Positions 34,801 through 40,800 of a stretch of DNA of 64,000 bases are shown one piece after another. The translations under genes and the position numbers were made by a program. The notes under the pieces are model-generated. The model saw only the letters and a list, made by a program, of their open reading frames with translations, was not told the DNA's origin and did not search any database. The first letter of the stretch is position 1, and every line of letters starts with the position of its first letter. Location of the stretch: assembly GCA_002269645.1 (NCBI GenBank), contig NIVC01002446.1, forward strand, positions 62,001-126,000, written 5' to 3'. The stretch is from Macrostomum lignano (lineage: Eukaryota).

Positions 34801-37800
34801 TGGCCAGGAAGTGTGGAGAGACACAGAGAGGGGATGGCCAGGAAGTGTGGAGAGACACAGAGAGGGGATGGCCAGGAAGTGTGGAGAGACACAGAGAGGG
34901 GATGGCCAGGAAGTGTGGAGAGACACAGAGAGGGGATGGCCAGGAAGTGTGGAGAGACACAGAGAGGGGATGGCGAGGAAGTGTGGAGAGACACAGAGAG
35001 GGGATGGCGAGGAAGGGGGGAGAGACACAGAGAGGGGATGGCGAGGAAGTGTGGAGAGACACAGAGAGGGGATGGCGAGGAAGGGGGGGAGAGACACAGA
35101 GAGGGGATGGCCAGGAAGTGTGGAGAGACACAGAGAGGGATGGCGGGGAAGGGAGGGAGAGACACAGAGAGGGGATGGCGAGGAAGTGTGGAGAGACACA
35201 GAGAGGGATCGCGGGGAAGGGAGGGAGAGACACAGAGAGGGAATGGCGAGGAAGGGTGGAGAGACACAGAGAGGGCATGGCGGAGAATGAAGGGAGAGAC
35301 ACAGAAAGGGCATGGCGGGGAATGAAGGGAGAGACACAGAGAGGGCATGGCGGGGAATGAAGGGAGAGACACAGAGAGGGCATGGCGGGGAATGAAGGGA
35401 GAGACACAGAGAGGGCATGGCGGGGAATGAAGGGAGAGACACAGAGAGGGGATGGCGGGGAATGAAGGGAGAGACACAGAGAGGGGATGGCGGGGAATGA
35501 AGGGAGAGAAACAGAGAGGGGATGGCGGGGAATGAAGGGAGAGACACAGAGAGGGGATGGCGGGGAATGAAGGGAGAGAAACAGAGAGGGGATGGCGGGG
35601 AAGTTAGGTAGAGACAGAGAACAAGACGGTCAGCAGTAACTGAAAGCATTTAAAGTGCATGCTATCATATTAAAACTTTCGCGCGCACTTTAGTATGAGA
35701 ACGGAGCAATGGATGAGAGTCCGCTCGCGCCGGACTGTCTTTTCAGTTTATATTAGTAAATTATCGCACTAGCGTAGACAGCGGAAAGTTCTTACAGAAT
35801 GTGTCTGAGATATCATTGTTTACCAGATTGTTCATGCGTGATCGACTTGTTTATATTAAATTAGCTTTTTACAAGCACAGATGAAGAGCATAATTGTATC
35901 CTGTTTGGTCATAGGTGAAGTGCATGAACTCTAAATGAAAACAACTCGAGCGAGCAGCAATGCAATCCGTTAAATATTTGATGCAGCGCTTCACCGACAC
36001 CTGGGTGAGAGTGGGGCGCGTGGCAGCGCGTTGGGAGGGTCTGGGGTACCTGGACGGGCAGCGGAGCTCTGCTGCTGCTGAGTGCGCTGAGCCTGCAAAG
36101 GTTTCTCAGCCTGCTGCTCCGGCTTCTGCTGACCACCCTCTGCAAGTAAATAATACCGATGGCTAGATAGATAGATAGATAGATAGATAGATAGATAGAT
36201 AGATAGATAGATAGATAGATAGATAGATAGATAGATAGATAGATAGATAGATAGATAGATAGATAGATAGATAGATAGATAGATAGATAGATAGATAGAT
36301 AGATAGATAGATAGATAGATAGATAGATAGATAGATAGATAGATAGATAGATAGATAGATAGATAGATAGATAGATAGATAGATAGATAGATAGATAGAT
36401 AGATAGATAGATAGATAGATAGATAGATAGATAGATAGATAGATAGATAGATAGATAGATAGATAGATAGATAGATAGATAGATAGATAGATAGATAGAT
36501 AGATAGATAGATAGATAGATAGATAGATAGATAGATAGATAGATAGATAGATAGATAGATAGATAGATAGATAGATAGATAGATAGATAGATAGATAGAT
36601 AGATAGATAGATAGATAGATAGATAGATAGATAGATAGATAGATAGATAGATAGATAGATAGATAGATAGATAGATAGATAGATAGATAGATAGATAGAT
36701 AGATAGATAGATAGATAGATAGATAGATAGATAGATAGATAGATAGATAGATAGATACATAGATACATAGATACATACATAGATAGATAGATAGATAGAT
36801 AGATAGATAGATAGATACATAGATACACACATAGATAGATAGATAGATGGATAGATTGATTGATTGATTGATTGATTGATTGGTTGATTTATTGATTGAT
36901 TGATTGGTTGATTGATTGATTGATTGACTGATGGATTGATTGATTGATTGACTGATTGATTGATTGATTGATTGATTGATGGATTGATTGATGGATTGAT
37001 TGATTGATTGATTGATTGATTGATTGATTGATTGATTGATTGATTGATTGATTGATTGATTGATTGATTGATTGATAATGGTGTTTAAAATGCACATCTG
37101 ACGGCACCCAGCCAAAAGTCAAAGTCTTGAAAAATATTTCCATTGTTTTATTAAGACAAAAAACATTTAGTATGATTAGTAAACTGTCCTCCCTAGATTT
37201 TCAATCATCAATCAGCAAGTGTTTTCCGCAGCTTCTGCACTACCACATCGAGAATTTCCTAACCGGATTATTTGGCGTGCCATAGCGGCATTGAAACGCC
37301 CTGGAGAAATCATCCCTATTCGCCATCTGCAATATGAGTCCCATGCTGCTTAAACCGCTGTCACCATGCTGAGCAGGCTTTGTTGAGCACATGGCCTGGG
37401 CGGCATTCACGAAGAACAACGGCTCTTTGGACAGATTAAGGCCCAACGGCTCTTTGGACAGATTAAGGCCCAACGGCTCTTTGGACAGATTAAGGCCCAA
37501 CGGCTCTTTGGACAGATTAAGGCCCAACGGCTCTTTGGACAGATTAAGGCCCAACGGCTCTTTGGACAGATTAAGGCCCAACGGCTCTTTGGACAGATTA
37601 AGGCCCAACGGCTCTTTGGACAGATTAAGGCCCAACGGGTCCGGCAGCAGCGGGTTCGATGTCGCATGACTCCTACAGCCTAGCAACTTCGCTGCGACTT
37701 GGTAAGCTGCTTGTAAACCACTCGTGCGCTTCTCAAAATTGGCGGTCTTCGATGCTTCACTGTTGAAAAGAGATCGAGCCTGGTTGGCTAAGCAGTTAGA

Positions 37801-40800
37801 CTTGTTCTCAGCGTTGCCTAAGTCAAAGACTCGCAGTGCGTTAATAGCGATTTAGAAGATCTGGCCGAACTCCTGAGCGATGGCGGTGCCGATGCCGCCC
37901 AAATTGACGTAGTCGGGTTGGACGTCTAGGAAAAATGGAGGCGCTAACCAGTTCGCTGGGAGACGCAAGTGCGACCACATCGCAGTCCCATCTGGCCGGT
38001 TTCTTATCGCGTAGTGCAGGTGCCGCTCGACTGTGTCGATAAGCGTGACGTTCCGAATGCCGGAAGCTACGCTGAAAACGTTCGCCTGCCAGCTGGACCT
38101 CAGCGCAATGTCAAGCAGCCTTCCGAAACGCCTCGAAACGCTGATATCTTTAAGAATGCGCCTGCTGTCCGGCAGGACGTGCTGGCTAAACAGCGCCTTC
38201 AGCTCGGCAGACGAGTAGCTGCCAAAGCCCAGAAAGAAAGTTGTCGGCCAGGCGCAGGATATTTTCAGTCACATTGGGCTGCACTTTACCGGCTGCGTAC
38301 GCAGCAAATCTCCTCTTCTGAGCGTTGACAATCCGCGTTACTAAAATGTGGAGCTTAGCCGCCTCATCCGGGCCCGGGCCGTAGGCCGAGTGGAACATCC
38401 GGGATACAACCGGCATTAGAAGACTCGTCGTCAGCTCGGCGCAACCCTGGAAACTGTCGGCACCGACAACCGGCTGAAATTCTGGAGCCCGCGCCTCAGC
38501 TGGCCGGGAAAAAACCCGGAGAATCTGAGCATCCAATATAGCAGAAGGAAGCCACGGTGGGGCTCGAGGCCAGAAACTCCGAGTCCGTTGCTGGCTCCTG
38601 CGATTGGAGAAAGTTTGCCAAATTCACCGCCACAACGATCTGGTGGCTGAAGAGAATGCGTCGGTTTGTTAGAATCGCTATGGATGGAGTGTTTGAAGAA
38701 GTTGCTTCACAGGAACGGTCGATAGGGACTGGCGCACCTGCTCAAAGTTATCGAGCTGTCCAACTTCCAGGGCCAGGTGCATGCTGGCTACTGACTGAAC
38801 GCCTTTTTTATCAGTCATGACGCACTTACTGACCCACGAGTCATTCTTGATGGCGGAACTCAACTTTTTGTAAATGTTATCAAATTCGACCAGTCTTTCT
38901 AAGAAACTCTGTGACCCGATTCTGAGGTGCCTGTCAAGAAACTTCAACACCGGCATCAAATCTGGCCAGCTGTTGTTAGGCGGATTTGAGCAGAGTGACA
39001 GCGACAGCTCAACAGCACTCTCGCCAGCTGGAAGGCTGTACTCCTGCGGATTGACCAGGACCATGAAAGACAGGAAATCCGACTTCATGAGGCTTCCAGG
39101 CTCACCGCCAGCCAGCATCGCCAACAGTTTCTCAGTGCTTCAGTGTCGCACAGACCGGATCTCACTGTCGCTTCGCTGTAGCAATTCCACCAGCAGGTCA
39201 ACGGACCGGCTATCGTCGCCGCCATGGACCCAGGTGGCCAGCATGTGTCTGGAACAGCCTGTTTCTGCTTCGCTCGGCTGCTAAGTCCATTGTGCTCTTG
39301 ACCTGCCGTCTGGCGTTTCGTCTCCGGCGCTTGTCGCGGATTCGGGCTGGCCCAGTTGCGGAATTTGCCGCAGGAGAATTCTAAGAAATCGTGGCACGGA
39401 CTGGTCGAGCTGTTCATCCAGCCGGACAACCGGGTGGCGAGCTGCGCGCACTCCAGGGAGCTGCACACCGCCTCGGTTGCCAGGGACTCCCGGCTGCAGT
39501 TCAATGAGCTGAGCAACAACAACAGGAAGGCTGCAGTCAGCATTTTTCTATGGGGCTCCTGTTTTCTATCTCTAATGGTGAGTTGAAATTCCAGTTGTGT
39601 CGAGATTTTCCCATAATATTGAAGCTTAAATGTAAAAATGTAACAATATTCAACTGACTCGGATTCTATGAGATAAATAATTCGAGTAAAATAGTCAATA
39701 GAAGCTTGATAATTTTTGATAGTTAAATTTTAAAACATTTTCTTATGTCTACGATTTTTTGAACCAATTAATAACTGAGACAATGATTCTGCTACATTCG
39801 CTCGAATTCACGCCTGACACCCCAAAACATTCGGATTCACTCCAAAGACTCTGGAGAATCACTCTGGTTCAGTCCAAAGACTCTGGAGAGTCACTCTGGT
39901 TCAGTCCAAAGACTCTGGAGAGTCACTCTGGTTCAGTCCAAAGACTCTGGAGAGTCACTCTGGTTCAGTCCAAAGACTCTGGAGAGTCACTCTGGTTCAG
40001 TCCAAAGACTCTGGAGAGTCACTCTGGTTCAGTCCAAAGACTCTGGAGTCACTCTGGTTCAGTCCAAAGACTCTGGAGTCACTCTGGTTCACTCCAAAGA
40101 CCCTGAGAGTCACTCGGGTTCACTCTAAGTACTCACTCTTAGCCACCTCAACGCCAAACGGGCTGCCGGGGATCTGCTGTCCGGCAAAGAACACGTTGAC
40201 GCTGTGCAGCCCGTCGTCTCTGGGCACGTACTCCACCAGGTAGGCCCCCTGCTGGTCCGACTTTGGCGAAACTCGAAGCTTCACCGAGTCTCGTTGACCG
40301 TGCGGATCTAGGATTACGCAGCCGATGGAGCCAGGACCGGCGCCTGTGGCGGAGTGACGATTGGAGTGATTACACGAGTGACATTGATGGCGATTGATGG
40401 AGCGACGGGTGTTTGCCTGAGACTCACTGTGATTGTTTAAAGGAGTGAGATTGTGCTGGTTGGAGTGACATAGTGCTGGTTGGAGTGACATTGTGCTGGT
40501 TGGAGTGACATTGTGCTGGTTGGAGTGACATTGTGCTGGTTGGAGTGACATTGTGCTGGTTGGAGTGACATTGTGCTGGTTGGAGTGACATTGTGCTGGT
40601 TGGAGTGACATTGTGCTGTTTGGAGTGACATTGTGCTGGTTGGAGTGACATTGTGCTGGTTGGAGTGAAAATGTGCTGGTTGGAGTGACATTGTGCTGGT
40701 TCGAGTGACATTGTGCTGGTTCGAGTGACATTGTGCTGGTGGGAGTGATATTTTTCTAGTTGAAGCAAAGATGCAACGAGAAAATGTGCAGCACGCAGAC

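Follow-up and report, generated by a model that had tools for sequence, protein, structure and literature searches.

A 64,000-nt stretch of the Macrostomum lignano assembly Mlig_3_7 (GCA_002269645.1, contig NIVC01002446.1), hereafter the window, carries at 39543–37240 on the minus strand a single-exon, full-length-sized homologue of the M13 (neprilysin-family) peptidases. The window matches its source contig with 100% identity. The gene opens with an ATG at 39543–39541, closes with a TAG at 37242–37240 and follows the frame path 0, 2, 1, 2, 0, with neprilysin and ECE-1 matched at both ends. A first-pass annotation had placed an intronless M13 homologue of full-length size at these positions without stating a strand, and the profile and pairwise comparisons below bear this out.

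M13 homology and nesting in filamin

The conceptual translation with its frame segments joined by X matches human neprilysin (NEP) with E=5.8e-11 at both ends (query 24–61 to NEP 3–40, query 541–719 to NEP 502–699) and ECE-1 with E=2.6e-8. It scores 39.3 bits against Pfam Peptidase_M13 (PF01431), above the curated cut-off of 24.5, whereas the pieces taken separately reach only 24.3 and 13.3 bits. The Pfam model Peptidase_M13_N (PF05649) gives 13.2 bits on the joined translation against a cut-off of 32; the N-terminal start with C..C/PC.DF..CG matches NEP, and a custom profile at 54 bits. This custom profile, built from 103 hits, returns domain E-values of 1e-18, 1e-12 and 2e-17. Residues ~86–365 have no significant profile match and a low-confidence structure model, and the reading frame across them was assigned from ORF length, GC3 and weak similarity. 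In the AlphaFold model (pTM 0.67) the catalytic-domain part has a pLDDT of 75–96, and a Foldseek search against the PDB returned M13 structures as all of its top 19 matches (probability 1.0), at a TM of ~0.48 because the middle of the protein is unmodelled. The homology to M13 is far above chance, and the motif strings quoted in the first-pass annotation (QEFGQ and the scaffold strings) are all present in the minus-strand translation. The sequence is, however, only ~20% identical to everything aligned, such that no tree grouping would be reliable. A word-indexed search of protein sequences with the X-joined translation yielded 8000 candidates, none at E<=1e-3, and distant relatives were found by exhaustive HMMER search instead. 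No record matches the first ORF (152 aa) exactly.

A hydrophobic leader at the N-terminus (39543–39490), seen directly in the sequence, is likely to be a signal peptide. The region does not show the type II arrangement of M13 proteins with a cytoplasmic tail and anchor, and the first conserved Cys motif begins at residue 27. The protein therefore likely carried a signal peptide, and by its sequence would have been secreted.

The gene lies within a filamin intron at 40137–36138 (minus strand), which we delimited by placing the flanking exons with the annotated protein PAA57778.1: one exon ends at 40138 and is followed by a 29-codon exon at 36137–36051. The nesting and the shared orientation noted in the first pass are thus confirmed by exon placement. 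The window encodes 2130 of the 2134 residues of the annotated filamin without disruption. Using a ~1950-aa concatenation of filamin exons as a query, we reached two homeologous contigs, both of which hold the M13-like gene in the same intron. At the locus of an older filamin paralogue (L012), no M13-like sequence was found.

A retrocopy had been suggested as a possible origin. Insertion of a processed copy of a multi-exon parent into the filamin intron would account for the lack of introns and the sense orientation; an AATAAA (37152–37147) lies 88 nt past the stop codon and, while no A-run follows it, an A-rich-derived (AATC)n/(TCTA)n microsatellite does follow on the coding strand and might mask an old tail. 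However, no poly(A) tail, target-site duplication, LTR, TIR, or flanking direct or inverted repeat was found at the gene, which has an AT-rich upstream region and a start codon of its own. P0012, the closest intact M13 gene of M. lignano, likewise consists of one exon (2364 nt), so the intronless condition is the family state here. The nesting also predates the split of the subgenomes, and the older filamin paralogue without an insert dates the insertion to after the filamin duplication, nothing more. No closer parent gene was found among 1.84 billion representative proteins. We consider a retrocopy improbable.

Active-site replacements and when they arose

At 37875–37861, QEFGQ takes the place of the zinc-binding HExxH, with the Glu kept and both His changed to Gln (H583Q, H587Q); both Gln codons are CAG, one transversion away from the CAY of His. 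Downstream, an 11-residue segment (37755–37723) replaces GENIADNGG with a 7-residue alignment gap, so that neither the third zinc ligand nor Asp650 is present; both E646 and D650 of ExxxD are gone, and the D column holds R. The NAFY/NAYY motif aligns to HLHYAI with an 8-residue insertion (N to H, A to L), replacing N542. The C-terminal CxxW reads FSMW (C747F), with S in the His711 column and G in the Arg717 column. The first-pass report that neither zinc histidine is kept and that ENxAD is absent agrees with this alignment. Judged by sequence, none of the hallmarks of an active M13 peptidase (HExxH, ExxxD, NAFY, CxxW and His711/Arg717) is present. The losses are concentrated in the catalytic columns, of which 1/11 is kept compared with 39/63 other conserved columns (Fisher p=0.002). 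The invariant cysteine and phenylalanine columns are all kept (7/7), as are nine of the ten conserved cysteine columns.

These replacements could in principle be decay after pseudogenisation of an active HExxH peptidase. His to Gln takes a single transversion per codon, the zinc site is present in one copy of three, which leaves it without a cross-check between copies, and the closest intact relatives (P0012, P0152 and P0003) have HEIGH. A canonical HExxH in the closest paralogue was the observation that the first-pass annotation had named as refuting its own reading; the relatives do carry it, but at 24–29% identity they are too distant to decide the matter. The extent of decay argues against this origin. 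With only one or two stops across 682 codons, neutral decay is put at ~0.03 substitutions per site (near 3%), with 0.1 (10%) as the ceiling, and base composition in the assigned frames (GC1/2/3 of 0.54/0.45/0.66) is close to that of the intact paralogue (0.53/0.42/0.69). Under this limit, the probability that both His became Gln after gene death is below 0.3%, and the further losses of N542, E646, D650, H711, R717 and C747 make such an outcome far less likely still. Decay of this extent falls far short of accounting for catalytic residues being almost all gone when most structural residues are kept. Given the preferential loss of catalytic columns, we regard post-death decay as an unlikely source of the dead site.

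We instead favour, by inference, a protein from a secreted lineage that was already catalytically dead and was pseudogenised later, as proposed in the first pass. The decay limit, the low probability of a double His replacement and the bias towards catalytic columns speak for this part of the proposal. The intact QExxQ paralogues for which the first pass recommended a search did not appear: a search of 1.84 billion representative proteins turned up no relative that is intact and has QExxQ, its best match reaching 89 bits at 34% identity, and the pseudo-enzyme stage is consequently one that we infer rather than observe. Before its death, the product would have been a pseudo-peptidase with the M13 fold and disulphide cysteines, in which the zinc ligands, ENxAD, NAFY, His711/Arg717 and the CxxW Cys had been replaced. 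Such a protein would have been secreted for a binding or structural role, not for catalysis, in the manner of the Drosophila Nepl proteins.

Shared and private decay in three homeologous copies

The window copy contains four frame changes (0 to 2 to 1 to 2 to 0) that add up to zero, and we give their positions as ranges. Frameshift 1 (frame 0 to 2) is placed by ORF overlap in 39280–39088, most likely near 39250; this range has equal length in the three homeologous copies, which indicates a lesion common to all. ORF overlap and the GC1/2/3 pattern also point to a probable in-frame TGA (VRH*STEK) at 39142–39140, a codon identical in three copies and escaped only if frameshift 1 falls in 39139–39088. 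Frameshift 2 (frame 2 to 1; ORF overlap) lies in 38741–38681, and the frame 1 that follows is backed by a tblastn match to P0012 residues 329–417. If located in 38728–38681, where there is no length difference, it is common to the three copies; 38741–38729 is deleted in the other copies as part of a 37-bp deletion. Frameshift 3 (frame 1 to 2; ORF overlap) lies in 38623–38499, a range that includes a T6 run (38514–38509) and is of equal length in three copies, hence again a lesion common to all. Frameshift 4 (frame 2 to 0; 38241–38232) was identified by three-copy comparison as a 5-bp deletion between 38237 and 38236 in the window copy only; in the other two copies CAGTA is present and DNFQYTLGFGSY is read in frame. 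Finally, an in-frame TAA (37854–37852) stands two codons past QEFGQ, in a 319-bp stretch missing from the other two copies, and so comes without an age estimate. The ~3–4 frameshifts and a TAA counted in the first pass are thereby recovered as four frame changes, a TAA and a probable extra TGA. Short introns were considered in place of frameshifts and rejected: the paralogue has none, one of the breaks is the 5-bp deletion seen in a single copy, and the core of the protein is missing altogether from the other copies.

At least two frameshifts (1 and 3) and the in-frame TGA are therefore common to all three copies, and each copy has lesions of its own. Both other homeologs have lost the 37-bp stretch kept in the window at 38765–38729 and the 319-bp stretch at 38100–37782, which spans the NAFY-region, PPFF, NLGGIG and QEFGQ, so that the zinc-site region is removed from two of three copies. 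One homeolog has a further 2-bp deletion and the other a 1-bp insertion. Divergence among the three copies is 0.9–1.6%. The dN/dS comparison recommended in the first pass, run here between the M13-like copies, gives values of about 1 (0.79, 1.54 and 0.76), with substitutions spread evenly over the codon positions (7/11/9, 4/11/6 and 3/6/5). By comparison, stretches of the filamin CH-domain, the roadblock gene and the ASXH gene are 99.2–100% identical between copies with no frame-breaking indel. Real lesions and neutral evolution, the two marks of a pseudogene, are thus both seen, the first as shared and private lesions in three contigs and the second as a dN/dS of 0.76–1.54. None of the three homeologous subgenome copies is intact, and the first-pass view of a broken gene holds by frame analysis and copy comparison alike.

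That the gene is alive and its lesions are long-read assembly errors, a caveat raised for some of them in the first pass, is hardly credible. In favour of errors, the assembly is PacBio-based (PMC5730564), one frameshift range contains a T6 run, the frame changes cancel out and the coding-type GC3 signal is still intact. Against them, the assembly is also Pilon-polished (PMC5730564), and at least three lesions (frameshifts 1 and 3 together with the TGA) recur unchanged in three contigs that were assembled separately. The private lesions include the 37-bp and 319-bp deletions, by which the core of the protein is lost, and the copies differ at a dN/dS of about 1. The 6.4 kb of filamin coding sequence on either side of the gene, which serves as an assembly control, is frame-perfect, and no annotated protein of the gene was found in the protein collections searched. 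Absence from Logan was set aside as a sign of no expression, because a look-up of the roadblock protein there gives only three NCBI contigs and M. lignano RNA-seq is apparently not included.

The three copies fit the three subgenomes (S, L1 and L2) described for M. lignano (PMC10733133). The lesions common to all of them indicate that the gene was dead before the recent genome multiplication, after which the copies drifted neutrally, accumulating private deletions and variation in a 27-bp minisatellite.

This minisatellite, absent from the first-pass annotation, is an in-frame tandem array at 37638–37417 inside the coding sequence. It comprises 8.2 perfect copies of a unit encoding GLNLSKEPL, with 9 and ~15 units in the homeologs, and arose from the gene's own 'LPGL.L...QLFF' segment.

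Significance and relation to known M13 systems

The M13-like gene is now presumably without function. Very probably, it is the relic of a single-exon, signal-peptide-bearing M13 member in a filamin intron, dead in three copies and a pseudo-peptidase before its death. An intact ORF, expected of a functional Nepl-like pseudo-peptidase, is lacking, the window copy being interrupted by four frameshifts as well as one or two stops, and the homeologs broken too. There is ample precedent for secreted M13 homologues that are catalytically dead, and intronic pseudogenes are common, which makes this an ordinary kind of object. It has some value as a clean case that can be dated in a neopolyploid flatworm model, with loss before the multiplication and separate decay in three subgenomes, and as a small internal measure of how neutral substitutions, indels and minisatellites behave across S, L1 and L2. 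More speculatively, the gene before its death may have encoded a fast-evolving, secreted, zinc-less M13 pseudo-protease private to Macrostomum and independent of the insect expansions. If true, this would imply a separate origin of Nepl-like dead neprilysins in flatworms, and intact orthologues may still serve in binding, for example in reproduction, in sister species.

The closest relatives come from the same genome, the M. lignano paralogues P0012/P0152 (PAA72063.1/PAA91250.1), together with the Logan relative P0003. Like the window gene, they are single-exon, have a signal-peptide-like N-terminus and contain the NLGGIG and LFF(V/I).AAQ..C strings, and they give the longest alignments to it (residues 350–719). 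Unlike the window gene, they are intact and retain VNAF, HEIGH, HSP..R and CxxW, deviating only in the third zinc ligand (GNDISD/SNDISD compared with GENIAD). This flatworm clade (P0012, P0003) with its non-canonical third ligand could interest the field of pseudo-enzyme evolution.

Human neprilysin (PDB 6suk, 1dmt) and ECE-1 (3dwb) share with the window gene the fold, the domain order, the N-terminal C..C...PC.DF..CG and the C-terminal scaffold, but differ in being active zinc enzymes anchored as type II proteins, whereas the window gene has the catalytic losses listed above. Inactive M13 expansions were noted by Bland et al. 2008 (PMC2259306), and 21 of the 28 fly M13 genes are predicted to be inactive, almost all of these being predicted as secreted (Nepl15: PMC8223033, PMC7822871). 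Drosophila Nepl proteins such as Nepl15 resemble the window gene in combining the M13 fold with lost catalytic motifs and a signal peptide in place of the type II anchor; NAFY, HExxH, ExxxD and CxxW are all lost here too, behind a signal-peptide-like N-terminus. However, the fly genes are intact and expressed, whereas the window gene is broken in all three genomic copies and represents a flatworm lineage independent of fly Nepl, with no match above 34% identity. In its shared and lineage-specific lesions, dN/dS of about 1 and conserved synteny, it resembles unitary pseudogenes found in all homeologs of a neopolyploid, and is unusual among them only in the in-frame minisatellite that has grown from its coding sequence.

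A neprilysin-family gene within a filamin intron

On the minus strand, the M13-like gene starts with an ATG at 39543 and ends with a TAG at 37242-37240. Its translation, with the separate frames joined by X for searching only, matched human neprilysin at both ends (E=5.8e-11) and also ECE-1. Pfam Peptidase_M13 scored 39.3 bits (cut-off 24.5), and a profile from 103 hits matched the N-terminal cysteine motif and the C-terminal domain (E 1e-18 to 1e-12). An AlphaFold model built with a 60-sequence alignment reached pLDDT 75-96 in parts of the catalytic domain and was poor over residues ~86-365; its top 19 PDB matches were all M13 structures (19/19). 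These results concur that the gene is an M13 homologue, as the first-pass annotation had proposed. Judged by its sequence it is extremely divergent: when 1.84 billion representative proteins were searched exhaustively with HMMER, the best match had 89 bits and 34% identity, and none fell below 1e-30.

From 40013 to 60306 the window agrees at every position with NIVC01002446.1:102013-122306. Filamin PAA57778.1 (2134 aa, annotated on this contig) maps to the minus strand; one of its exons ends at 40138, and the one after it, a Gln-rich exon of 29 codons, is at 36137-36051. The M13-like gene therefore lies inside a 4-kb filamin intron on the same strand, which confirms the nesting reported earlier. 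The 29-codon exon is annotated in all three homeologs and sits at the edge of a (TAGA)n array; a minisatellite of 32-bp period and a long array of tetranucleotide repeats border the gene itself.

Mini- and microsatellites with periods of 35, 4, 32, 20, 31 and 32 bp crowd the filamin introns (35000-35620, 36164-37077, 39836-40122, 40442-40752, 41084-42593 and 45311-46178), and their lengths vary strongly among the three homeologous contigs, the 32-bp array being much longer in NIVC01004645.1. At only 1026 aa, the filamin model on that contig is shorter than its two counterparts, of 2067 and 2134 aa, which looks like a truncated annotation, not a biological difference. Directly upstream of filamin and divergently transcribed is an intronless 97-aa dynein light chain roadblock/LC7 gene (50013-50306, plus strand), which has exact matches on three contigs of Mlig_3_7 (GCA_002269645.1) and an identical protein in all homeologs. 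Also on the plus strand are an alanine-rich long ORF with an ASXH (Asx homology) domain (58603-60351), part of an annotated 729-aa gene in which a 9-nt in-frame indel distinguishes a homeolog from the window; an ORF fragment matching the Mos1/mariner transposase HTH_48 domain (2196-2531, E=2e-10), probably a mariner-type transposon remnant judging by this match; and a long ORF of a 13-residue repeat (SQATQSSDTVKRH), encoded by a 39-bp tandem array (12628-13934), with no meaningful Pfam match.

Disabling lesions in three homeologous copies

All strings quoted in the first-pass annotation occur in the minus-strand translation, including QEFGQ (37875-37861) in place of HExxH, and an 11-residue string stands where GENIADNGG is expected. 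The gene is broken as described: its coding path requires four frame changes (0, 2, 1, 2, 0; net zero), numbered in the coding direction and located within 39280-39088, 38741-38681, 38623-38499 (with a T6 run inside) and 38268-38189, and an in-frame TAA lies at 37854-37852. A further in-frame TGA is probable at 39142-39140; it is escaped only if frameshift 1 falls in 39139-39088, which is disfavoured by the GC pattern by codon position.

M. lignano DV1 has three homeologous subgenomes, 1.4-2.4% apart (PMC10733133). Using the annotated filamin proteins, we reached the other two filamin loci, L010 (NIVC01000469.1) and L011 (NIVC01004645.1), where the M13-like gene occupies the same intron. In a three-way alignment all copies have the same length across the ranges that hold frameshifts 1 and 3 (T6 run included) and the TGA is identical, so these three lesions are common to them. 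Frameshift 2 is also common unless it lies in 38741-38729, a stretch removed by a 37-bp deletion that L010 and L011 have in common (38765-38729). Both also carry a 319-bp deletion (38100-37782) that takes out the NAFY region, PPFF, NLGGIG, QEFGQ and the TAA. Frameshift 4 results from the loss of 5 bp in the window copy alone; L010 and L011 have CAGTA there and read ...DNFQYTLGFGSY... in frame. A further 2-bp deletion is private to L010 and a 1-bp insertion to L011.

The copies differ pairwise by 1.6%, 1.4% and 0.9%, with dN/dS of 0.79, 1.54 and 0.76 and substitutions even over codon positions. The functional coding stretches compared (filamin CH1/CH2 exons, the roadblock gene and a stretch of the ASXH gene) show another picture: identity between copies is 99.2-100% and no indel breaks the frame. 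The window encodes filamin undisrupted for 2130 of 2134 residues. The earlier suggestion that some lesions could be sequencing errors does not hold, given lesions common to three contigs, an intact filamin and a Pilon-polished assembly (PMC5730564). From the three-copy comparison, the disabling lesions are real, the gene is a pseudogene in all three copies, and both its death and its nesting are older than the subgenome split.

The gene also contains an in-frame 27-bp tandem array absent from the first description (37417-37638, minus strand; unit GLNLSKEPL), which expands a segment of the gene itself that pairs with 'LPGLDLNHKQ' of neprilysin in the alignment, immediately ahead of the conserved LFF..AQ..C. 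The window has 8.2 perfect units, one homeolog 9 and the other ~15 (L010 ~16870-17110; L011 ~17100-17500), with G to A unit variants in the homeologs only.

Origin as a retrocopy, also raised previously, found no positive support: an AATAAA lies 88 nt past the stop codon with no A-run after it, and no target-site duplications, LTRs or TIRs were found around the gene. The intronless state is not diagnostic here, since P0012 (PAA72063.1), the closest intact relative in M. lignano, likewise consists of one exon of 2364 nt. No M13-like sequence is inserted in an older filamin paralogue (54% identical); this implies no more than that the gene reached this intron, or originated in it, later than that duplication.

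Loss of the active site relative to gene death

Since the zinc-site region remains in the window copy only, we infer rather than observe that the active site was lost before the gene died. The gene retains its coding signature: GC1/2/3 is 0.54/0.45/0.66, and its intact paralogue has 0.53/0.42/0.69. With one or two premature stops over 682 codons, neutral change amounts to ~0.03 substitutions per site (95% bound 0.1), and at that level of decay the chance of both His codons becoming CAG after death is <0.3%. Across 59 homologues, 74 columns are conserved at 75% or more; of these the gene keeps 39 of the 63 non-catalytic ones, among them every one of the seven invariant Cys and Phe columns, versus one of the 11 catalytic or substrate-binding ones (Fisher p=0.002). 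Only Glu584 survives; N542, A543, H583, H587, E646, N647, A649, D650, H711 and R717 (neprilysin numbering) are lost. An active enzyme that simply decayed would not leave this pattern; quite probably the protein had long been a pseudo-enzyme when the gene died, and that death was recent. The catalytically dead M13 lineage proposed at first is thus favoured as a stage before death, by inference from GC signature, stops and column loss. The gene is a pre-polyploidy pseudogene, and the secreted M13 homologue from which it derives had probably lost catalysis already.

Comparison with other M13 proteins

The nearest intact flatworm relatives, P0012 (L009 6001-8364), P0152 and P0003 (L004 110-2410), keep HEIGH, VNAF, HSP..R and CxxW, whereas the window gene has QEFGQ. 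They read GNDISD or SNDISD for GENIAD, placing Asn at the third zinc ligand Glu646, which puts their own catalytic activity in doubt. Inactive M13 homologues are already well documented: expressed insect M13 genes without catalytic residues were noted by Bland et al. 2008 (PMC2259306), and 21 of the 28 Drosophila M13 genes are predicted inactive 'Nepl' genes, nearly all predicted to be secreted (PMC8223033). The M13-like gene is similar to these in the motifs that it has lost and in its signal-peptide-like N-terminus; unlike them, it is dead, and it stands for a separate flatworm lineage that is very divergent.
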